Below, in pieces: positions 30,259 to 63,586 of a stretch of DNA of 64,000 nucleotides. Position 1 is the first letter of the stretch. Each line of letters begins with the position of its first letter. The position numbers were made by a program, and so were the translations under genes. Source of the stretch: Octopus sinensis (lineage: Eukaryota); the NCBI RefSeq assembly GCF_006345805.1, contig NC_043006.1, positions 19,654,001 to 19,718,000 of the forward strand. Direction: 5' to 3'. The notes under the pieces were generated by a model that worked only from the letters and a program-made list of their open reading frames with translations, was not told the origin of the DNA and did not search any database.

Positions 30259-30794
30259 TATACACATATATACATGCATCCATATATTTATATATATATA
30301 CACATATATACATCGATCAACAACAATGGAAATCGTAGCTGTGATACCATTGCCGGTGGCACATAAGAGAACCATCCGAACATGGCCATTGCCAGCACCA
30401 CCCCAACTGCCTCCGTGCCAGTGACATGTAAAAAGCACCATCCAATCGTGGCCATTGCCAGCCTTGCCTGGCCTCCGTGCCGGTGGCATGTAAAAAGCAC
30501 CGTCCGATCGTGGCCATTGCCAGCCTTGCCTGGCCTCTGTGCCAGTGGCACGTAAAAAGCACCATCTGATCATGGCCGTTTACCAGCCTCGTCTGGCACA
30601 TAAAAAGCACCCACCACACTCATGGAGTGGTTGGCGTTAGGAAGGGATTCGAGCTGTAGAAACATTGCCAGATCAGACTGGGCCTGGTGCAGCCTTCTGG
30701 CTTCCCAGACCCCAGTTGAACCGTCCAACCCATGCCAGCATGGAAAGCGGACGCTAAATGATGATGACGATGATGATGACATACATACACACAT

Positions 30795-33073: not shown

Positions 33074-33309
33074 TTTATTTAAAGCAGCAGAAAATTCAAC
33101 AAAACCTGTTACTCTGAGTTTCACGTTGCCATTCGTCGGACAGTTTTTTACTAGAATAACAAAACCTGTTACTCTGAGTTTCAAGTTGCCGTTCATCGGA
33201 CAGTTTTTACTAGAATAGCAAAACTATTCTAGCAAAAACTGTCCGACAAATGGCAACGTGAAACTCAGAGTAACAGGTTTTGTTGAATTTTCTGATGCTT
33301 TAAATAAAG
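33074..33309. repeat. Penelope-LTR-like palindrome with three hammerhead-like units
   Basis: TTTATTTAAAGC..GTTTTT / AAAAAC..GCTTTAAATAAA inverted arms, plus one extra 60-bp tandem unit. Units at 33106-33143(-), 33166-33203(-), 33239-33276(+). Confidence 0.8.
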
Positions 33310-33479
33310 TATATATATATATATATATACATATATACATAATGGGTTTTTAGTTTCCATCTCCCAAATTCACTCACAAAATTTTGGTCAGCTTACGGTT
33401 ATAATAGAAGACACTTGCCCAAAGTGTCAAATGATTGGGAAAATATGCTTCTCAAGTACACAGCCATGTCATTTACAAG

Positions 33480-33850
33480 GTACCACTGGTACTGATGATG
33501 TACCAGTCTGTTGCAGGGTTAAGCCACTAGAAATAGGGTAAACTAGTCTATTGAGGGAGAAATCGTCATTTGTCACTGATACTAAGGGTAACACAGTCTA
33601 TTGATAGGTAAATCCACTAGCTGCCATATGTACTGATAATACCTCAGTTTGTTGATAGGTTAACCCACTAGCTGCTAATGATGTTGAGGGTACTCTAGCC
33701 TATTGATGGGTTAACCCACTAGCTTCCACTGGTACTGAAGGTATACCAATCTGCTAATAGTTTAACCCACTAGCTGCCACTGGAACTGAGGATATTCCAG
33801 TTTCTTGATGGGCTAACCAACAAACAGCCACTTTGTACTGGGGGTACACC
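33480..33850. repeat. degenerate ~51-bp minisatellite upstream of each first exon
   Basis: CCAC anchors at 33614, 33665, 33716, 33767 (unit ~TAACCCACTAGCTGCCACTGGTACTGAGG..). Homologous blocks at ~35345-35710 and ~42660-42915. Confidence 0.8.
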
Positions 33851-34472
33851 ACATCACCCTGAAATGCATTCACTGCATTACCTTCCACCCAATAGCTAGA
33901 TTGTGATCGCCATTCACTTCTACAGCGCCGTCGTCTATACCTTACCCCTTACCCCCTTACCCACCCATGCATCACCCTCCATCCATCCACCCACACTCAC
34001 ACATCATCATCGTCATCATCGTCGTCATTATTGTCATCATCATCATCATCATTATCGTCTTTGTCATTGTCATCATCTTCACCCATTTCTACCCTCTATT
34101 CAACCAACACCACAGCAATAACAACAAGTAACATAAATCAAAGAAATGTCGATAACATTGATAACATAAATTTCTTGAATCTAAACACAACAAAATATCT
34201 TTTAAAGAACTATTAATCAGGATATTGTCCAAACTATACTGGTCCACTATGATTAAAAGAGCTTTAGTGGCTCAAGCAACTGTTAATTCCTGATCAACAA
34301 AATTTTCACTGCATTCCTTGTCATATTTCTAAGCAGTTTGCGAAAAACTCTTCATTCTGTCCATTGCAGCAGTTAAGTCAACAAGGAATGACTTTTGATT
34401 TCAAAGTAATTACTTAAAGAATTAAATTGTGCAGACGAATTTGGTCAAAAGAAATTCTTTATTTCATAAACG

Positions 34473-34770
34473 ATGCATAACATTCTATGGTTAATGATAA
34501 TTGCTTTATACTGTTTCCAACCAGTGCAGACATGGTGGCTTTGGAATAAAAAAAAATCTCCAAACGAATGCATAACCCAAAACATAACTCCATGGTCTGC
34601 CTGCAGACATAGATGTGGAGATATCTCTAAAAGACAAGTAATTGCCCTATGCACACATCATAAAGACAACTTACAGAAATGTGCTCCAGTCTGTGGAATC
34701 CCAGACACCAGAACATCAAAACCATGTTATCCTAGTGGATGCCATTCATCACAATATTGTTGTCCAAATC
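34473..34770 (+). CDS. variable first coding exon A: signal peptide + 10-Cys TSP1-like domain (99 aa + 1 nt)
   Basis: MHNILWLMIIALYCFQPVQT|WWLWNKKKSPNEC..WSACRHRCGDISKRQV..C..C..C..RTSKPCYPSGCHSSQYCCPN. Hydrophobic N-terminus, WSxC..CG..R motif, donor AATC|GTGAGT, phase 1. Confidence 0.85.
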
Positions 34771-36309
34771 GTGAGTACTTACTGTTATATATTTTTTTTA
34801 TATTGTTTGCAGACTACTTGAAGATGCAATATATATATATTGCAAACAACTTGCAAGTACAAGGGCTACCAGTTGAAAGCTCCGCATACCAGATGCTGGC
34901 AAGTTTATGATGTCATCAGGAGAGAATATATGCCATTTTGGGGCCTTCCTCTCGGTGGCATCATTTTGCAAACCACCCACCCTCATTGAAATGAAGCTCT
35001 GCTTACTAGACCAACCGGTTATTAGGTTTCGCTCAATATTCTTTCTTGCTCATAGTCTCTTTTTTAACCAAATCTAGTGGCTCACCTTCTCCACTGTAGT
35101 CTGGACATCACTCAGGGTGGTATTTGTTCTATGATGAGTAACAGGATTTGTTGAATTTTCTGATGCTTTAAATAAAGTATATATATATATATATACATAT
35201 ACATAATGGGTTTTTAGTTTCCATCTACCAAATCCACTCACAAAATTTTGGTCAGCTTACGGTTATAATAGAAGACACTTGCCCAAAGTGTCACATGATT
35301 GGGAAAATATGCTTCTCAAGTACACAGCCATGTCATTTACAAGGTACCACTGGTACTGATGATGTACCAGTCTGTTGCAGGGTTAAGCCACTAGAAATAG
35401 GGTAAACTAGTCTATTGAAGGAGAAATCGTCATTTGTCACTGATACTAAGGGTAACACAGTCTATTGATAGGTAAATCCACTAGCTGCCATATGTACTGA
35501 TAATACTTCAGTTTGTTGATAGGTTAACCCACTAGCTGCTAATGGTGTTGAGGGTACTCTAGCCTATTGATGGGTTAACCCACTAGTTTCCACTGGTACT
35601 GAAGGTACACCAATCTGCTAATAGTTTAACCCACTAGCTGCCACTGGAACTGAGGATATTCCAGTTTCTTGATGGGCTAACCAACAAACAGGCACTGGTA
35701 CTGGGGGTACACCACATCACCCTGAAATGCATTCACAGCATTACCTTCCACCCGATAGCTAGATTGTGATCGCCATTCACTTCTACAGCGCCGTCTGTCT
35801 ATACCTTACCCCTTACCCTCTTACCCAACCATGCATCACCCTCTATCCATCCACCCACACTCTCACATCATCATCGTCGTCATTATTGTCATCATCATCA
35901 TCATCATTATCGTCTTTGTCATTGTCATCATCTTCACCCATTTCTACCCTCTACTCAACCAAAACCACAGCAATAACACGTAATATAAATCAAGGAAATG
36001 TTGATAACATTGATAACATAAATTTCTTGAATCTAAACACAAAATATCTTTTAAATATCTATTAATCAGGATATTGTCCAAACTATACTGGTCCACTATG
36101 ATTAAAAGAGCTTTAGTGGCTCAAGCAACTGTTACTTCCTGACCAACAAAATTTTCACTGCATTCCTTGTCATATTTCTAAGCAGTTTTCATTCTGCCCA
36201 TTGCAGAGAGTAAGTCAACAAGGAATGACTTTTGATTTCTTAGTAATTACTTAAAGAATTAAATTGTGCAGACGAATTTGGTCAAAAGAAATTCTTTATT
36301 TCATAAAGG

Positions 36310-36574
36310 ATGCATGACATTCTATGGTTAATGATAATTGCTTTATACTGTTTCCAACCAGTGCAGACATGGTGCACAATCACAGAAATATCTCCATGGT
36401 CTGCCTGCAGACATAGATGTGGAGATATCTCTAAAAGAGAAGTAAGTACCGCATGCGTACAAGATGAAGACAACTCAGAGAAATGTGCTCCACTCTGTGG
36501 AGTCTCACACATAAGAACATCAAAACCATGTTATCCTAGTGGATGCCACATGTTTCAATATTGTTGTCCAAATC
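36310..36574 (+). CDS. variable first coding exon B (88 aa + 1 nt)
   Basis: Paralog of A with an in-frame 33-nt deletion, all 10 mature Cys kept and the same phase-1 donor AATC|GTGAGT. Confidence 0.85.
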
Positions 36575-36979
36575 GTGAGTACTTACTGTTTTATAATTTT
36601 TTTATATTGTTTGCAGACTACTTGATGCAATATATATATATATATTGCAAACAACTTGCAAGTACCAGGGCTACCAGTTGAAAGTTCCGCATACCAGATG
36701 CTGGCAAGTTTATGATGTCATCAGGAGAGAATGTGTGCCATTTTGGGGCCTTCCTCTCGGTGGCATCATTGTGCAAACCACTCACCCTCATTGAAATGAA
36801 GCCCTGCTTACTAGACCAACTGGTTATTAGGTTTCGCTCAATATTCTTTCTTGCTCATAGTCTCTTTTTTAACCAAATCTATTGGCTCACCTTCTCCACT
36901 GTAGTCTGGACATCACTCATAGTGGTATTTGTTCTATGATGAGCTAGGCCTAGCAACAACAACAACAACAGTCGCCTCA

Positions 36980-37142
36980 CAATGTTTCCAACAAATCCTC
37001 TACATCCAACTTCGATTGGAAAATGCACTGTTTTCCAGCCTGTGTTTTCAGATTCCTCAACGAGGTTTTTATAGCAGTCGATCATTCAATCCTGAGTGGC
37101 ATCCTGATGGATGTCACTCATCGCAATATCATTGTCCAAACC
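36980..37142 (+). pseudogene. relic first exon C
   Basis: ..WHPDGCHSSQYHCPN then AACC|ATAAGTACTCACTACTTTATAATACT, which aligns with D's AATC|GTGAGTACTCATTACATTATAATACT. Donor GT->AT, Cys lost, no signal peptide. Confidence 0.7.
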
Positions 37143-37323
37143 ATAAGTACTCACTACTTTATAATACTATTAATATTCTCTTCCTAATTTCAGTAATAAG
37201 TTTATTATTATTTAAACACACACAACTGTGGCTGTGTGTCTAAAAAGCTTGCTTCCCAATCACATGGCTTCGGGTTCATTCCCACTGTGTGATACCTTCA
37301 ACAATTGTTGTCTACTATATATT

Positions 37324-37488
37324 TCATTTTGTGCCGGGTAGAAGCACCACTGATGCTATATTCCTGGTCCGACAACTGCAGGAGAAGTACCTAGCTAAAG
37401 ATAAACCCCTCTACATAGCTTTTGTGGACTTGGAGAAAGCCTTTGACAGGGTTCCCCGATCCCTTATCTGGTGGTCGATGCGGAAACT
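37324..37488 (+). mobile_element. RTE-clade LINE RT fragment
   Basis: FVPGRSTTDAIFLVRQLQEKY..LYIAFVDLEKAFDRVPRSLIWWSMRKL. Confidence 0.9.
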
Positions 37489-40400
37489 AAACACAGAGGG
37501 GACAAACAAGGACAGACAAACGGATTAAATCGATTACATCGACCTCGACCCCAGTGCGTAACTGGTACTTAATTTATCGACCTCGAAAGGATGAAAGGCA
37601 AAGTCGACCTCGGCGGAATTTGAACCCAGAACGTAACGGCAGACGAAATACGGCTACACATTTCGCGCGGCGTGCTAACGTAGCCCTTAGGATGACCAAA
37701 GCCTTGTCAGTAATCCACAATAAGTCTCCATAAAGTATCAAAAATGTAAACTGTGTTCAGAATCAGGCTCACTATCATGAGGTAGTGAGTTCAATTCCCA
37801 GACCAAGCTGTGTGTTGTGTTCTTGAGCAAGTCAGTTTATTTCACATTGCTCCAGTTAACTCAGCTGTAGAAATGAGTTGCAATGTCACTCGTGCCAAGC
37901 TGTATCGGCCTTTGCCTTTCTCTTGGATAACGTCATGACATGGAGAGAGACAGCTGGCATCAATGGGCAACTGCTGGTCTTCCATGAACAACCTGGCCTG
38001 GACTTGTGCCACAGAAGGTAACTTCCTTGGTGCAATCCTATGGTCATTCATGACCAATGGCGGTGGTCCTTTATAATTACAGATAATATATGGCCACATA
38101 ATTACAGATAATATAGGGTCACATAAAAAGCACCCATGCCAGTGGCATGTAAAAAGCACCTGTCCCAGTGCCACGTAAATAGTGCTCATGATGGTGCCAG
38201 ATACAAAGCAACCATGCTGGTGCCACGTTAAAAGCACACAGTACACTCTGTAGAATGGTTGGCATTAGGAAGGGCATCCAGCCATAGAAACCATGCCAAA
38301 ACAGATAATTGGAGCCTGGTGCAGCTCTCCAACTGGCCACCCCCTGTCAAACCATCCAGCATGGAAAATGGACTTTAAATGATGATGATGATGATGATGA
38401 TAACAGTGACGTTGATGACACTGACAGAGGTGGTGGGAGCTACAGAGGGGGTTGTGGCAGCAGATGTGACAGCTGTGGCTGGGGGGGGGGACAGCAGTTG
38501 TGCTGGTAGCTGTGGTTTTAGTCACAGCAAAGGCAGTAGCAGTGGTGGCAGCAATGATAGGGGCAAGTGGATAAGATAAATAGATCAACAAATTATGGGT
38601 CAGGAGTTCAAATCCACTGTAAGCCTTTTCACTGGGCCTTTTACAGGGGTTCATTATGATACATAAGCAGTGGTTATAATTTGAGAAAAATATTTCTTGG
38701 GAAATCTTCAAATATATTTAAGGGGCAAAAATATCTTATCATTTCTTTTATATGATCCCAACTTTAAATGTTGATGTCTCCTGTACTCTGGGATGTTTTC
38801 AAGGGACCAGCTTTTAGTTAAGTGTGACAAGGTTCAAGTAGAAGAAAATTATGTCCCTTAAATATGGAAATGGCAGTCAGTGTCACACAAGTTACTCTAG
38901 TGAACTGTCCCAGTGATGTTTGAATTGTACTCTCCAGTGTGATATCCAGTTGTATCTCCCCAGTATAGAGTGTTTAATAGGATCTAAATCTGGACAGTAT
39001 GTTATTCAGAATAGGTCTTAGCCCATGCCAGTGGGTCCCAAAACCCTCCACATCACTGATGGGTCCAAAGAAACAGCACAGCCATTACAATTTAGCACCA
39101 ACGTTGCTACAGAAATTATCAGACTAAGATTGCAGACAACATCAAAGAGATTCAGAGACACTGACTCCTGATTTTTCCCTAGGGTTAATTCCTGAAGCCT
39201 TTCCCATGGCAGTGGGGGTGAGATTGGAATCAGAGTTTCCCTTCCTTCTCTTAGCTGGGTTGACCCCCATCACCTCCAGGTTAATGAGCTCCATCTGTCC
39301 ATTTGACTAGCCTGTTAACCCTTTAAAATTTAACCCAGCCATATCTGGCCCAAATATTCTACCCGTTTTATGTTAAAACTGGCCATATCTGGACTCTCAC
39401 ACCTATCCTACAATGTCATTCTAGAAATAAACAATTACATCCTCAAAATCGCTAAGCTTCAAGATGATGCATGATTAAATCAAAACCATATGAATAAATA
39501 AGCATTATGTTTGACAAAATAATCTGAATGCTAAAGGGTTACCTTATACCTGGGACCCTGAGAGGTGTTACGACTCCAGATTAAAGTAGGCCTGGAAGCA
39601 ATAGTGGCTAAGAGGGTTCCATGACTGGATGCAGTTTAATGTCATAACCAAGACATTCCTTAATCTCACATACCTGCCTGTTGTACAATATAAACATCAT
39701 CATCATCATTTAACGTGCGCTTTCCATGCTAGCATGGGTTGGACGATTTGACTGAAGACTGGCAAACCAGGTGGCTGCACCAGGCTCCAATCTTGATCTG
39801 GCAGAGTTTCTACAGCTGGATGCCCTTCCTAACGCCAACCACTCTGAGAGTGTAGTGGGTGCTTTTTACATGCCACCAGCATGAGGGCCAGTAAGGCGGT
39901 ACGACCATATAACATCATAATAATTTTATAGTATAACTTTAACAATGGTCTATATCACCATCTTCATCATCTCTCCATCACTATCTCTACATCATCATCT
40001 GTATCATCACCATCATTGCCATCGTTATCATCATTATCATCATCATTACTTGCAGCAACATTAGCATGACATCCTTAGCATTATCATCAGTGGTGTTATC
40101 GTCATCATCACCACCTTCATCATCATTGTCATCATCACCACCACCACCATCATCATCGCTATCATCGTCATCATCATCATCATCATCATCCTCATAAATA
40201 TCAGCAGTAGCAGTAGTGAAACCGTACAGTCATTTTCATCATCATCATCATCATGACAATCCCCAGCACCACTACCACCAACATCATCATCGTTATCATC
40301 ATCACCACCACCAACACTATTATCATCATAACACTAGAAAGCACCACTACAACACCATCAACCCACTGCCAATACAACCACCACCACTACCACAACAGTA

Positions 40401-41554: not shown

Positions 41555-41885
41555 TATATATATATCCCGTGATCACGTGATATATATATAGTGATCACGT
41601 GACCGACCAGTCCATCAGATGTAGTTACACATCGCTGGTCACAATGCGTTCGCATTGTTTTAGCCTTCGGATGACGCCACCCCGCTGGCTAAGCGAGCAG
41701 GCCAACAGAAGAAAGAGTGGGAGAAAGAGTGGTGAAAGAGTACAGCAGGGATCACCATCCCCTGCCGGAGCCTTGTGGAGCTTTTAGGTGTTTTCGCTCA
41801 ATAAACACTCACAACGCCCGGTCTGGGAATCGAAACCGCGATCCTACGACCGCGAGTCCGCTGCCCTAACCACTAGGCCATTGCG

Positions 41886-42212
<327 letters not shown>

Positions 42213-43671
42213 GAATACTGGAGTGGTTTCCTATTACCTTCTCCAGACAGGCTGGATTTGTGCTCAGAATGTAGAGAGCTGGAAAATATATTGTAAAGCT
42301 TTTCTGCTAATATGCCAGTGATTTTGCCAGTCTTCCCCCTGCATAGCAACGTGAAATGAAGTACTTTGTTCAAGAACATAATGTGCCACCTGGTCCAGGA
42401 ACTGAACTCACAATCTAGCGGTTGTGAGTGGAACACCTTAACCACTTGGCTACATGCCTTCACATTTACATGAGTGTGTGTGCGTGTATGTGCGTGTGTG
42501 TGTGTGTGTGATGGGCTTCTTTTAGATTCCATGTACCAGATCCATTCACAAGGATTTGATCAGCCCAGAGCTATAAGAGAAAACCGTTGCCCAAGGAACC
42601 ATGCAGTGGTACTGAAACCATGACTGCATGGTTGGGAAAATGAGCTCCTTAACCACACAGCCAGTCTGTTGCAAGACTATTTCACCAAGCTACCACTAGT
42701 ACTGATGATGCCAGTCTGTTGTAGGCTTTAGCTACCAACAGCCACTAGGAGTGAGGGTAAAGTAGTCTGCTGAGGGTAAACCTATCAGCTGCCACTGATA
42801 CTGGGGATACTCCAATTTCTTGTTAGATTAACCCACAAGCTGCCACTAGTACAGATGGTACCCCAATCTGTTGCAAGGTTAACCCACAGATATCCACTGG
42901 AACTGAGGATACATGATATTACCTTGGAATTTATTCACTTCTCTACCTTCCACCCACTAACAAAATTGCAGTCACCCTAATTCTACGCACACACTACAAC
43001 ACCTTTTTCCTCCCTGCTACCCTTCGGTCCACCCACTACATTAAACTTTGCCCACCCACTATTGTATTGCTTTCTACTCACCCTCCATATGAGCCTCTTT
43101 TTGCCCTTTATTACCAACCACTACCCACCAACTAGATTGCTTTACAGCCACCCTCTATCCCATATACTTCTTGATCACCTTCTACCAACACCTTATCCAC
43201 TCCTACATCACCCTCTGTCTGACCACCCCATACAATCATCATCATCTTCCTCTTCTACCCTCTACCCAGCCACCACCACAGCAACAACAAGTAATATGAA
43301 GCAACTGATCGCTGGGGCGTTGACAACATTGATAACCTATATTCCAATCAAAAAGAAAACAAAAACGTGAAATGTTTTTCAGATAACTATTATTCATGAT
43401 ATTCTCAAAACTGAATTGATCCCCCTTGATTAAAAGAGCTTTAAGTGGCTCAAGTTAATGTTAATCTCTGACCAATGAGATTTTTGCTGCGTTCCTCAGC
43501 ATGTTTCAAAGCACTTTGCAAAATGATTTTCAGTGTCCATTACAGAGGGTAAGTCAACTAGGAATGACTTTCAATATCAAACTTTGGTGCAGTAACTATT
43601 AAAGGATTGAATTGTGCACAAAAATTGAAGAAAATAATTGTGTGAAGAAAGAATTATTTATCTCATAAACA

Positions 43672-43972
43672 ATGCATAGCACTCGATGGCTAACGATAAT
43701 TGTTTTAGTCTGTCTCCAACCGGTGCAAACATGGTGGCTGGGTAAAGGCCGTAGCAAACCTCCAAACAAATGTTCTTCTAAACGAATTACTCAATGGTCT
43801 GCCTGCACACATAGATGTGGAGATATTTCTAGAAGACAAGTAGGTGCCTCTTGCACAGATTATGGAAATAACTTACAACAATGTGCTTCAGTATGTGGTA
43901 TCTCAGACACCAGAACATCAAAGGCATGTTATCCTAGTGGTTGCCACTCATCACAATATTGTTGTCCAAATC
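43672..43972 (+). CDS. first coding exon D (100 aa + 1 nt), nearest to the shared exons
   Basis: MHSTRWLTIIVLVCLQPVQT|WWLGKGRSKPPNKC..WSACTHRCGDISRRQV..CYPSGCHSSQYCCPN. Same 10-Cys frame and AATC|GTGAGT phase-1 donor. Confidence 0.9.
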
Positions 43973-47639: not shown

Positions 47640-50600
47640 TTATGTACACCAGGGCTTAAGTCGCCAGTTATTTCTGCTTAGTTCATTTAGCTAGCCCGCA
47701 GCGAAGTTCCTGTCTACAGTTTGTCTGTCACGAATCCCTGCCCTACATAGCTACCCCACCCCCAAGAACTGTTGACTATCATTGGAAACGGGAAGGCATT
47801 TTAATTGCCCCGTCCATGCGTGTGCTTATTCGGTTATTTGGTGACCGTTCCTTGTCAAAAGTTGGTGTGATCTGTCTAGGACGGCCCCTGTTTGGTGTCT
47901 GGGCCACTTGAACGGGGCTGTCAATATCGAGATGGGTTGGTTTCACTCTATCGATGAAGACTGTCTTGTCATCCTCCAATTAGGAGTTGGAATGTTTCAT
48001 CTCCCGGATGTATGACTTGATATGGACCATCGTAGAGTGACTAGAGGGGTTTTCGTCGTGTGTCACGTCGAACGACCACAAAGTTAGCCGTGCGGATGTC
48101 ATTTGGTACGGATGATCCGGGTATACCGTGTGTTGACGTGGGAACAAGGCGAACTGGCCCACACTGTATCTCTGTTGAGCGAAGTACCGTTTGAATTCCA
48201 GATCCGACTTCGTATTCGGAAGGAACTCTCCTGGCACTGTAAGAGTAGCACCGTACACCATTTCCGCGGAGGAAGTGCCGAGATTTTCTTTTGGGGCAGG
48301 GCAGATTCCTAGCATCGCCACGGGAGTTGATCAATCCAATTTGGTCCATTAAGTCTGGTTGTCAGGGATTCCTCCAGACGGCGGTGAAATCTCTCCACAA
48401 ATTCGTTGGTCTGTGGGTGGAAGGCTATTGTACGATTCATTGTGATTCTGAAAAGATCACACATGTCATTCCATAGCTTTGAGGTGAATTGTGGACCCCG
48501 ATCGGATAAGATGCTATCTGGAACACCAAAACGGGCAACCCAGTTTGCGATGAAGGTTCGGCTGACTTCTTGTGTTTCCGTGCAGCGGAGAGGCATAGCT
48601 TCAGGTGTAGCGGTCTACCAAGGTTAGTAGATACGAGGAACCCTGTGAAAGTGGTAGGGGGCCGACAAGGTCGATGTTGACATAGCTGAATCGGGCCTGA
48701 GGTGGTTCATAGTTGCCGATGGGTGCTTCGGTATGTTGATGGACCTCAGCTTGTTGACAGGAGACGCAGGACCTGGTCCAGTCCCCGATTTGCTTGGCCA
48801 TATTGTGCCAGATAAATTTGCTTGACAGCAGCCGCCGTGTGGATTTAGTACCTGGGTAGAAAAGTCCGCGAACGATGTGGAAAACTTTCTTACGCCAGGC
48901 TGATGGGACGATCGGTCGTGGCTTCCCAGTGGATACGTCACACAGTAGGGTTTTGCAGTTAGAGCCAAAGTGTACATCCTGCTAAGAAAGTGATGTGATA
49001 GCAATGCGGTAGGCCCTTATCTCGTCATCTATCTGTTGGGTTGCAGCCATAGCTTCATAATCCAACCTTCCGTTATTGGTGCTAGGTAGGTGTGAGAGCA
49101 GGTAGGAGCACGAGAGAGTGCGTCAGCAACTGGGTTGCCCTTGCCAGCTATGTATTGGATGTCTGTAGAGTACTCAGAAATTGCCGATAGCATTTGTTGG
49201 TGGCGTGCCAACCAAGGCTCTGAGAGCTTGCTCATAGCAAAGGTGAGTGGTTTGTGATCCGTGTATACTGTAAGGAAATAGCAAAAGTGGCGGACACCTA
49301 GATGGACAGTCAGTAGTCCCCAGTCAAAAGCACTGTATTTTTGTTCAGGGGGTCGTAGTTGTCGGCTGAAGAAGATGAGATGTGTTGTTCCGAAACGCCC
49401 ATATTGGCTGCGTCAGATGTGTCAACTGTGAGTGCAGTCCAAGTTGACATATGAGTATGGGACAGTATGGTTGCTTGAGCCAGGGCTTGTTTTGCGGATT
49501 CGAAGACTGGGGCCATTGTACTATCCCACTCCACTTGTCTTTTTGAACCCTCTTTTGACAGTGCCTTGTATAGAAATCTCATCACTTTTGCTGCAGAAGG
49601 AATGAAACGATAGTAAAAGTTTACCATGCCCACAAATTGGTGTAGAGCCTTGCTTGTGGTGGGGCATGGAACGGATAGGATAGCTTTCACTTTCTCTGGC
49701 AGGAGTGTAGTGCTGGCACTTGTAGTTCGATGTCCCAAGAAGTCGATTTCTGTCGCACCAAAATGTACTTGACCGGGTTAATTACTAAACCATACTGTTC
49801 CAGCCTATCCAAAAGGGTCACTAGTGCCTCTTATGTAACTCTGCATTTGGGATTGCAATAAGGATATCATCTAAGTATGCAAAAGACAAAATCGAGGCGT
49901 TGGAAGGCTTGTGCTGCGTTTTTCAGCCCAAAAGGTGTAGGTAGGAATTTGTACAGACTGAAAGGAGTGATCACAGCAGTTTTCGGTACATCGTCGTCTT
50001 GTACTGGTATTTGGTGGTATCTGCGGATGAGGTCAACCTTGGAAAAACCGAGCTCCCGGCTAACTGGGCTGAAAAATCCTGTATGGGCGAAATGGGGTAG
50101 CAGTCAGGTGTCGTATCCACTTTGAGACGGCGGTAATCTCTGCAGGGTCGATAACCTCAGTTGGATTTGGGGGCCATACACAAGAGTGATGATCAGGGAC
50201 TGCTTGATCAGGGACTGCTTGATCAGCGAACTATGCCCGATGCTTCCATATTGTCGAACTCGGCCTTTGCGATTGCAAATTTGTCAGGTGATAGACGACG
50301 TGTGCAGCTGTGCATTGAGGGGAGGGGCCGGTGGTAGAGATGTGGTGTGTCACTCTGTGATGGGCTGTAAGTTTGGAAAATGTCGGGGTGGTGAGATTGG
50401 GGCTACTTACAAGAAGATCCGAGAATTCGTTTTTGGTCTGCGAGATGGTTGCTATGTGAGGGGAGGCATGAGCAGATGTTGCAAGAGGCACAGAAGCGTA
50501 TGTTTTGTTGTCGAGGAATCGTCTCCCCCACCCAAATCAATCAGTAGTAAGTGTGCTCAAAGAAAGTCTGCATCGATTATGGGTTGAAGGACATGGTGAA

Positions 50601-62912: not shown

Positions 62913-63586
62913 ATTGTGTACAGAGTTTACCTCCTATGGTGGAGGCTACTTGACTGTTAAGCCCATCAATTCAAGTCCATCACCCACACAGTATTACCGA
63001 CAAACTGCATCGACAGAAACGAAATGCTTCCAATACGATAGAAAACCTCCTCAACACTGTAGCGAGACATTAAAGTGTGGTTCGGAGCCTTTGAAAGTGA
63101 TTCCAACTCTTTCCCGATCACCAAATGTTACAATTATGTTCGATGGTTGGTTTGATGGTAATGTCTACAGAAATGGAACTGGAAACAACGGCGTTGAATC
63201 ATATGAAGTTGTAGTCCATCCTATGACAGTAGCAGGAGATAAACTGCAAGTAGATCAAACGAAAACACTTTATAAGTATGAGAGTTTTAATGAAACAACT
63301 TTAGAGTTAAGTCTGTCTGCAGCACCAGGAGTTTATGCGGTATATCTCACCATCAAAGATTTTGCTCACAATGCCCAGTATGCTCGCAAATTCTTTCTCT
63401 ATGACAACAGTTCCTTGATTGAAGCCAGAAATATTCCTCTACCGAAAGTTATTTCAAAAACTGGTCGAAGTGACATCCCTTGGTATTCAGATGAAGAAAA
63501 CGCCTGTATCACATGGTACAATCTTTTTATGAACACTTTTCTTGAAACGTATTTGAAACCAATAAAGGAAGATAATACTATACCAG
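62913..63586 (+). CDS. shared exon 6 (large ectodomain segment); gene continues beyond the window
   Basis: CTTCTCTTTCAG| acceptor phase 2, 674 nt open: LCTEFTSYGGGYL..YDRKPPQHC..C..PL..GWFD..GVESY..PGVYAVYLTIKDFAHNAQYARKFFLYDNSS..W. Several N-x-S/T sites. Donor CAG|GTACTT. Confidence 0.85.

Follow-up and report, generated by a model that had tools for sequence, protein, structure and literature searches.

The 64,000-nucleotide stretch analysed here, referred to throughout as the window, lies on the forward strand of Octopus sinensis contig NC_043006.1 (positions 19,654,001 to 19,718,000; assembly GCF_006345805.1). It contains three putative exons, termed A, B and D, that appear to be the first coding exons of a lineage-restricted gene family. 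By prediction, each opens with a start codon and a signal peptide, includes a 67-residue domain with ten cysteines, and ends at a phase-1 splice donor; A and D also encode a short basic linker (Table 1). Exons A and B are recent tandem duplicates, D is an older paralog that serves as an outgroup, and between B and D lies remnant C, in which only the 3' half of the exon survives, in decayed form. We focus here on exon B, in which the cysteine-rich domain has changed much faster than the DNA around it, a pattern that supports positive selection following duplication.

Exon A was recognized from its translation, its hydrophobic core and its donor. Its ten-cysteine domain resembles the thrombospondin type 1 repeat (TSR) and is followed by one further base and then by the donor GTGAGT, and the linker that precedes the domain reads WLWNKKKSPNE. 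Exon B has the same layout except that the 33 nt encoding this linker, which are present in both A and D, have been removed by an in-frame deletion; the ATG, reading frame, ten cysteines and donor of B are all intact. In both A and B an in-frame TAA precedes the ATG, and the two share the phase-1 donor C|GTGAGT. The N-terminus, MHNILWLMIIALYCFQPVQT|W, is hydrophobic (10-residue Kyte-Doolittle mean of 2.6-3.0), with V at -3 and T at -1. Exon D retains the ATG, signal, basic linker, ten cysteines and phase-1 donor. Remnant C was found by tblastn and alignment. Other residues stand where its cysteines were (…WHPDGCHSSQYHCPN), it no longer has a donor GT, and the intron-like sequence that follows it resembles D, not A or B; it reads as a dead member of the family. 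A fragment of an RVT_1 reverse transcriptase directly follows it.

Table 1. Features of the window, in window positions (64001 and above are window-equivalent positions beyond its end).
Feature	Position	Strand	Content	Basis or remark
Duplication unit, copy 1 (U1)	33268-35135	+	1,868 bp; exon A, about 1.2 kb upstream, 365 bp of intron	alignment to U2
Duplication unit, copy 2 (U2)	35136-36940	+	1,805 bp; exon B	alignment to U1
Microhomology after U2	36941-36943		GAG, 3 nt
Exon A	34473-34770	+	whole exon	translation, hydrophobic core, donor
Exon A, predicted signal peptide	34473-34535	+	63 nt
Exon A, basic linker	34536-34568	+	WLWNKKKSPNE
Exon A, mature domain	34569-34769	+	ten-cysteine, TSR-like; 201 nt
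Exon B	36310-36574	+	whole exon; no linker
Exon B, predicted signal peptide	36310-36372	+	63 nt
Exon B, mature domain	36373-36573	+	ten-cysteine; 201 nt
Exon D	43672-43972	+	older paralog	outgroup
Remnant C	37021-37145	+	decayed copy of exon 3' half	tblastn, alignment
Intron-like sequence after remnant C	37146-37200		resembles D
Putative promoter or 5' untranslated region of A	34070-34472	+	conserved blocks	four-way alignment
Counterpart upstream of B	35925-36309
Counterpart upstream of D	43236-43671
N-I-T sequon of A	34581-34589		before PWSAC
Consensus-like donor within exon B	36442-36447		GTAAGT	phase 0
First recognizable exon of the large gene	62913-63586	+	single-copy in the genome	candidate splice target of A, B and D
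Further exons of the large gene	64001-104000		long open exons
Tandem 51-bp repeats	33543-33850; 35407-35765		one array in each unit
SINE-like element	29023; 33348; 35212; 42520
RVT_1 fragment	37244-37528		reverse transcriptase
LTR-retroelement remnants	47980-49780	-	degenerate pol
Triple tandem repeat	30409-30594		62-nt SINE-like repeats
Microsatellite block	41859-42269		400 bp, (TA)n-rich

Exons A and B lie within two adjacent copies of a longer segment, U1 and U2. Each copy starts with GAGTAACAGG and ends with TTCTATGAT, and the GAG that follows U2 forms a 3-nt microhomology junction. The copies have 55 substitutions in the 1601 aligned sites that lie outside the mature domain (3.4%), or 50 in 1596 once a misaligned (TA)n indel is removed; the substitution level is therefore 3.1-3.4%, to which nine indel events are added, including ones of 33, 12 and 9 nt. 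The flanks closest to the exons differ at 30 of 715 sites (4.2%). In the 3' intron, a naive alignment gives 18 differences in 365 nt, of which 13 remain once a misaligned (TA)n/AAG indel is scored as a gap, in agreement with the figure of about 13 in about 365 given in an original prediction for this locus. The tandem duplication is thus recent, with a neutral divergence between copies of about 3-4%. This divergence is uneven, running at about 1% in the distal 5' part (33372-33721) and at 4-6% in the 400 nt before the exon (34082-34470), which could mean either that the distal part later underwent conversion or that a putative promoter has changed faster. Tandem 51-bp repeats (...CCACTAGCTGCC...GGTAC...) are present in both units, where they adjoin a SINE-like element (SINE, short interspersed nuclear element) that also occurs elsewhere in the window.

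Assemblies of heterozygous invertebrates sometimes contain false duplications, and A and B could in principle be divergent haplotypes, or an assembly artefact, placed in tandem. We regard this as extremely improbable. The window contains no Ns, and the microhomology junction is clean and lies inside a contig of 106 Mb; a divergence of 3-4% together with nine indels would far exceed ordinary heterozygosity, and the excess of replacements described below would need explaining even if the copies were alleles.

Comparison of the two exons reproduced all of the counts in the original prediction, which had been made from the sequence alone. The signal regions differ at 1 of 63 nt (N3D), whereas the mature domains differ at 31 of 201 nt (15.4%). 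Among the 67 mature codons, 22 are changed in their amino acid and a single one is purely silent (CAT/CAC); all ten cysteine codons are unchanged. The changes are clustered (QVIALCTHHKDNLQK to EVSTACVQDEDNSEK, IPDT to VSHI, and SS to MF). A 100-nt sliding window along the U1/U2 alignment gave a sole peak, at 34583-34832, with 12-18 substitutions per 100 nt as against 1-7 elsewhere, and the contrast between the mature domain and the rest of the unit is highly significant (Fisher P = 3.4e-10; binomial P = 3.5e-12). In a duplicate this young, one difference in 63 nt is what neutral change would give, and is no evidence of special conservation of the signal.

We polarized the differences using D and its ortholog from another species (described below) as outgroups. 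This placed 22 of 32 on the B branch and 8 on the A branch, with 2 ambiguous, and assigned the sole silent change to A. In the mature domain, the B branch carries 21-22 replacement changes and no silent one; 7 of the 8 changes on the A branch are replacements. The ratio of B to A changes is 21:8 in the mature domain (P = 0.024), against 8:8 in the 385 nt of upstream flank that could be aligned to the outgroups, which indicates that the acceleration belongs to the exon of B, not to its whole unit.

The B-derived changes lie after the first cysteine, between RxV and the fifth cysteine, and in the two short loops that became VSHI and MF. Where B is altered, A, D and the ortholog differ from one another as well; B is unchanged at PWSACRHRCGDISKR, RTSKPCYPSGC and QYCCPN. 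Acidic residues were gained by two Q to E changes and by one change each of H to D and N to D, and the deleted linker contained KKK. As a result, the net charge (K+R-D-E) of B is 0, compared with +7 in A, +8 in D and +10 in the ortholog, and its isoelectric point is 6.95, compared with about 9.0-9.5 in the other three (9.0 in A). Two smaller features of the mature domain may be recorded here. Exon A has an N-I-T sequon just before the conserved PWSAC, where B (EIS) and D (RIT) have none; the third base of its Asn codon (alignment site 38.3) is derived on the A branch and the first base is ambiguous. In B, a change of GTAATT to GTAAGT (ATT to AGT, Ile to Ser) created a consensus-like phase-0 splice donor within the exon, at a position where A and D have the weaker GTAATT and GTAGGT; if used, this donor would truncate the domain after ...DISKRE.

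The intact flanks of the two units provide an internal neutral yardstick against which the replacements can be measured. By the Nei-Gojobori method (NG86), the replacement divergence between the mature domains (dN, per non-synonymous site) is 0.199. This is 6.2 times the divergence of all flanks (0.032; P = 1.6e-11) and 4.6 times that of the proximal flanks alone (0.043; P = 4.9e-8), an excess that relaxed constraint cannot account for. On the B branch, 21 replacements in the mature domain compare with 2.7-3.3 expected from the flanks of B itself (Poisson P = 2e-12 to 8e-11). On the A branch, 7 replacements compare with about 3 expected (P = 0.02-0.05), a mild excess over neutral.

The silent sites give a contrasting picture. 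Within the 201-nt tract, 1 purely silent difference was found and 1.4-1.7 are expected from the flanks, and the probability of seeing one or fewer under a neutral divergence of 15% is 0.008. The silent sites are therefore no older than the flanks, which implies that the tract is neither an old segment nor an imported one. This bears directly on the possibility that the duplication is old, that flanks, signal and conserved blocks were later homogenized by conversion, and that only the loops display its true age. The uneven flank divergence may reflect a partial later conversion of this kind; a greater age shared by both copies, on the other hand, would not predict an excess on B and not on A, and conserved and diverged blocks alternate every 30-45 nt, probably well below the length of typical conversion tracts. 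Given the youth of the silent sites, we consider this history very unlikely.

The original prediction had itself named gene conversion or chimerism, with the divergent tract of B copied from a more distant paralog, as the alternative to selection. The differences do fall into three patchy blocks that look tract-like, and members of multigene families often exchange segments. We therefore searched the whole 2.7-Gb genome for a donor at both the protein and the DNA level and recovered A, B, D and remnant C but no further copies; a set of weak genome matches (L004-L011) was rejected as paralogs, the cysteine pattern being present in none of them. The three divergent clusters (34, 23 and 23 nt) each occur once, even when 2-3 mismatches are allowed, and the derived states of B are unlike those of D, its ortholog and remnant C. 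A donor as distant as D would moreover have brought about a dozen silent differences (the A-D comparison has 13.7 synonymous differences), against the one purely silent difference observed. A conversion origin for the tract is, on this evidence, highly improbable.

To what extent the exon can be taken as coding was judged mainly from D. The sole close relative of the family among 5.8 billion proteins is P0001, an open reading frame (ORF) on two genomic Logan contigs of another species (L012/L013; SRR11869384 and SRR11869391). These contigs match the D region at 80-85% through non-coding sequence and match A at 73%, which identifies P0001 as the ortholog of D. No A- or B-like copy of that species was found in the protein collection, as would be the case if the duplication postdates the split of the two species, although the Logan contigs are not long enough to establish that such copies are missing. 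Between D and its ortholog, the mature part has a dS (divergence per synonymous site) of 0.23 and a dN of 0.06, giving a dN/dS of 0.26, and the signal gives 0.43; for A versus D the ratio is 0.38. The purifying selection on D and its ortholog indicates that the reading frame is real and the exon coding.

Two other ways of reading the exon were tried. Under the first, the signal region would be intron and an internal exon would start at CCAG|TG or GCAG|AC. This was rejected as the main reading on the evidence of D, which has CCGG and GCAA at these AGs and yet is under purifying selection; the would-be acceptor CCAG was lost in D by a synonymous change of CCA to CCG (Pro), and in A, B, D and the ortholog alike no stop interrupts the frame back to a conserved ATG. 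For B alone, a splice from the donor of A into CCAG|TG would be in frame and might conceivably occur. Under the second, translation would read through the donor; this was rejected, as the tails beyond it are unrelated among A, B, D and the ortholog. We infer that the exon encodes a secreted protein and that B is expressed. That B is or was translated, as had been proposed for it, is supported by the retention of all ten cysteines through 31 random hits (P = 0.012), or of all ten with no stop codon arising (P = 0.003).

Codon-based tests point in the same direction with less force. In the NG86 comparison of A with B the ratio is 2.5 (Fisher P = 0.07), with a dS of 0.080 that path-averaging at multi-hit codons makes too high. 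We fitted a branch model with our own implementation of the Goldman-Yang model (GY94) on the tree ((A,B),(D,ortholog)), in variants that differed in codon frequencies and in whether the signal was included. The dN/dS of the B branch (omega_B) was estimated at about 5.7-7.2 over a background of 0.30-0.62. A two-ratio model was preferred over a one-ratio model in likelihood-ratio tests (P = 0.0015-0.005), and tests of omega_B against 1 gave P = 0.019-0.071 across variants. Parsimony counts of 21 replacement to 0 silent changes on B differ significantly from expectation (Fisher P = 0.005), as do those in which each B codon is counted as a single event (16:0; P = 0.005-0.024). The expectation of a dN/dS well above 1 on the B branch is thus borne out by the estimates themselves, while the departure from 1 is borderline in part of the variants and in the pairwise comparison. 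Positive selection on B is accordingly supported, strongly against the internal neutral yardstick and at borderline to significant levels in codon-only tests.

Several points weigh against this conclusion. The codon-only statistics are modest (P = 0.07 by NG86 and in some of the likelihood-ratio variants) and draw on only about 42 silent sites, and the uneven divergence of the flanks (about 1% distally, 4-6% near the exon) makes the neutral yardstick approximate. Word-indexed searches over lengths of 55-175, 178-565 and 566-1800 residues found no annotated protein of 55-1800 aa that contains the exon. For the 178-565 range the query was a chimera that included the 62913 exon, and for the 566-1800 range it was a read-through reference with the region limited to the exon; the searches returned P0001 only, and none of the read-through ORFs of A, B and D had an exact match. 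AlphaFold2 models built on the four-sequence alignment had low confidence (mean predicted local distance difference test, pLDDT, of 48.0 for the whole exon and 48.7 for the mature domain). Finally, four multi-hit codons (TCA to ATG, TCA to TTT, ACC to ATA and ACA to GTA) account for 9 of the changes in B, and could represent multi-nucleotide mutation events, which inflate such tests.

This last point raises the question of whether a local mutational process, such as clustered multi-nucleotide mutation or error-prone repair, produced most of the excess. Multi-nucleotide events are known to inflate branch tests, the 9 changes in question come from a total of 21-22, and at codons 60-61 (TCATCA to ATGTTT) 5 of 6 adjacent bases have changed. 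Reducing each codon to one event still leaves 16 replacements and no silent change, however, and the changes avoid the ten cysteine codons and two conserved blocks. Their transition to transversion ratio is about 1:1, as in the flanks; 3 of 5 C<->G transversions create acidic residues (Q56E, H64D and Q69E), forming a coherent shift in charge; and neither the adjacent intron nor the signal shows an excess. Clustered mutation may contribute to the excess in B, but as its main source we find it distinctly unlikely.

The lack of any trace of expression in the protein searches and ORF look-ups also suits a different view of B, as a decaying pseudo-exon whose replacements after the duplication were neutral. 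Redundant young duplicates often die, the dead remnant C lies only 450 bp downstream, and after 22-31 hits chance alone would fairly often leave 88 codons open (P = 0.21-0.32). Drift cannot outpace the neutral rate, though, and B has accumulated 21 changes where about three are expected, none of them silent; its ten cysteines have been kept (P = 0.012-0.047), its one deletion is in frame, and its ATG, donor and conserved upstream blocks are intact. There is accordingly only a slim chance that B is a relic.

Taken together, we consider it probable that a recent tandem duplication was followed by adaptive divergence of B. Under this account, the 1,868-bp segment with exon A and its upstream region would have been duplicated at the 3-nt microhomology, after which copy B would have come under positive, directional selection that fixed 21-22 nucleotide changes between the cysteines, all of them amino-acid-changing. 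The loss of the basic linker would have been part of a shift from a basic product (+7) to a neutral one, with the disulfide scaffold, PWSACRHRCGDISKR and RTSKPCYPSGC held in place, and copy A would have been altered less, by its 8 changes. By inference, the changes in B may alter the binding target of the domain, in which case B would represent neofunctionalization of a binding module.

What kind of domain this might be was addressed by profile comparisons. In Pfam, B alone matched TSP1_spondin, at 16.4 bits against a cut-off of 41 (E = 0.012), which is below threshold; A and D gave no TSR match in Pfam. A family profile built from A, B, D and P0001 was searched against 1.84 billion representative proteins. 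After P0001, the matches were a multi-TSR protein (P0002; E = 3.4e-7, over six stretches) and a spondin-like protein (P0005; E = 6.9e-4), both confirmed by Pfam as TSP1_spondin/TSP_1 proteins, along with one unrelated protein with cysteine repeats and one spurious match. An hhalign comparison of the family with eight true TSRs aligned 41 columns at a probability of 82%, and the C-x11-C-x3-CG spacing is the same on both sides. The profile had no relative in the Protein Data Bank even at E values up to 10.

The likeness to TSRs (TSP_1, PF00090; TSP1_spondin, PF19028) resides in the N-terminal half. Its cysteines follow the C-x11-C-x3-C-G arrangement of spondin/properdin-type repeats, a Trp stands three positions ahead of the second cysteine, and next come a basic residue and then a hydrophobic strand (C..PWSACRHRCGDISKRQV). 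We propose that the domain of A, B and D is an extracellular binding module, as TSRs are. In contrast to TSRs, this domain has a single Trp and no WxxW(xxW) ladder (ITPWSACRHRCG), has CRHRCG with Arg in place of the Ser/Thr of the Cxx(S/T)CG fucosylation motif, and contains 10 cysteines where TSRs, with their elongated three-stranded fold and three disulfides, have 6, the extra ones being in a C-terminal CYPSGCHxxQYCC knot. The resemblance is therefore remote, and we describe the domain as TSR-like, not as a member of the TSR family. A literature search for a positively selected TSR-like family in octopus returned nothing relevant, and the family appears to be undescribed and lineage-restricted.

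The phase-1 donors of A, B and D require at least one further exon. We take the region upstream of A, in which conserved blocks such as GATTAAAAGAGCTTTAGTGGCTCAAG and AGTCAACAAGGAATGACTTT recur in B, D and the ortholog of D, as a putative promoter or 5' untranslated region. Similarity of A and B to D extends about 400 nt upstream of the ATG and only about 30 nt into the intron, which is consistent with a unit made up of promoter and first exon. A candidate splice target is the first recognizable exon of a large gene that lies downstream on the same strand. This exon has a strong acceptor at 62913, in phase 2, and a weaker one 11 nt further on at 62924, in phase 1 and in frame with the donors of A, B and D; its own donor at 63586 (phase 1) matches an acceptor at 66951 (phase 1). 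The gene has multiple exons and extends 40 kb or more beyond the end of the window (L014-L017), with long open exons of about 221-480 codons and recurring W.GF.D.ESGI and D.(T/S)PP motifs. No Pfam family was matched by it, the one hint being a weak resemblance to fn3.

A crude scan of 30000-62912 identified A, B and D as the only non-microsatellite candidates combining an ATG, a hydrophobic stretch and a donor, so that no other signal-peptide first exon for the large gene was found by it in the 33 kb upstream. In clustered protocadherins and UGT1A, variable first exons with their own promoters are joined to constant exons. The locus resembles these systems in its same-strand array of A, B, dead C and D, 19-28 kb upstream of a large multi-exon gene, and in the common layout of A, B and D, each of which follows conserved upstream blocks, has its own start codon and predicted signal peptide, and ends at a phase-1 C|GTGAGT donor. 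It differs from them in having three live exons only and in that the strong acceptor of the large gene is out of phase. That A, B and D, rather than being small genes in their own right, are variable first exons alternatively spliced to the constant part of this uncharacterized extracellular-repeat gene, each contributing its own promoter, signal and TSR-like recognition domain, is a doubtful proposal. If it were true, exon duplication and selection on B would generate variety at the N-terminal end of a giant protein, secreted or at the surface, in a protocadherin/UGT1A-style variable-exon system on a different scaffold, and the finding would be considerably more interesting.

The window as a whole is AT-rich (39.7% GC) and abounds in SINE-like, microsatellite and retroelement sequence. 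Between D and the large gene, the minus strand carries degenerate pol remnants of long terminal repeat (LTR) retroelement type, with integrase H2C2 and RNase H portions. Elsewhere, SINE-like sequence forms a triple tandem repeat of 62 nt, and there is a (TA)n-rich microsatellite block (Table 1). An Rfam scan of the region from 28 to 48 kb gave no match.

The case of B is a clear but not unusual one of adaptive evolution after duplication, with asymmetric divergence of a young, predicted secreted, cysteine-rich tandem duplicate. In a copy that is neutrally diverged by about 3-4%, around a quarter of the mature residues have been replaced (16 of 67 on the B branch; 22 of 67 relative to A), and the intact flanks supply a neutral yardstick that is missing in most such cases. 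With three live copies in 2.7 Gb, the family provides a candidate secreted binding or recognition module for a poorly annotated gene complement, and basic A and neutral B form a concrete pair of proteins whose targets could be compared.

Adaptive divergence of the mature region following duplication is known in mammalian beta-defensins, conotoxins and snake three-finger toxins. The present exons are unrelated to these in sequence, and differ from them in that signal and mature domain share one exon and in that only B, and to a mild degree A, is accelerated, D being constrained. The original prediction had likened the locus to toxin and immune genes, with a conserved signal, a fixed cysteine scaffold and hypervariable loops. 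The fixed cysteines and variable loops do describe A versus B. A conserved signal, as in conotoxins, does not: between A and D the signal (dN 0.179) is no better conserved than the mature domain (dN 0.157). Nor is the family hypervariable as a whole, given ratios of 0.26 between D and its ortholog and 0.38 between A and D, and the toxin- or immune-like label for A and B can be used as an analogy only. What the locus does share with beta-defensins, conotoxins and three-finger toxins is a young tandem duplicate with nearly identical non-coding flanks and signal, replacements above the neutral level between invariant cysteines, and an altered net charge.

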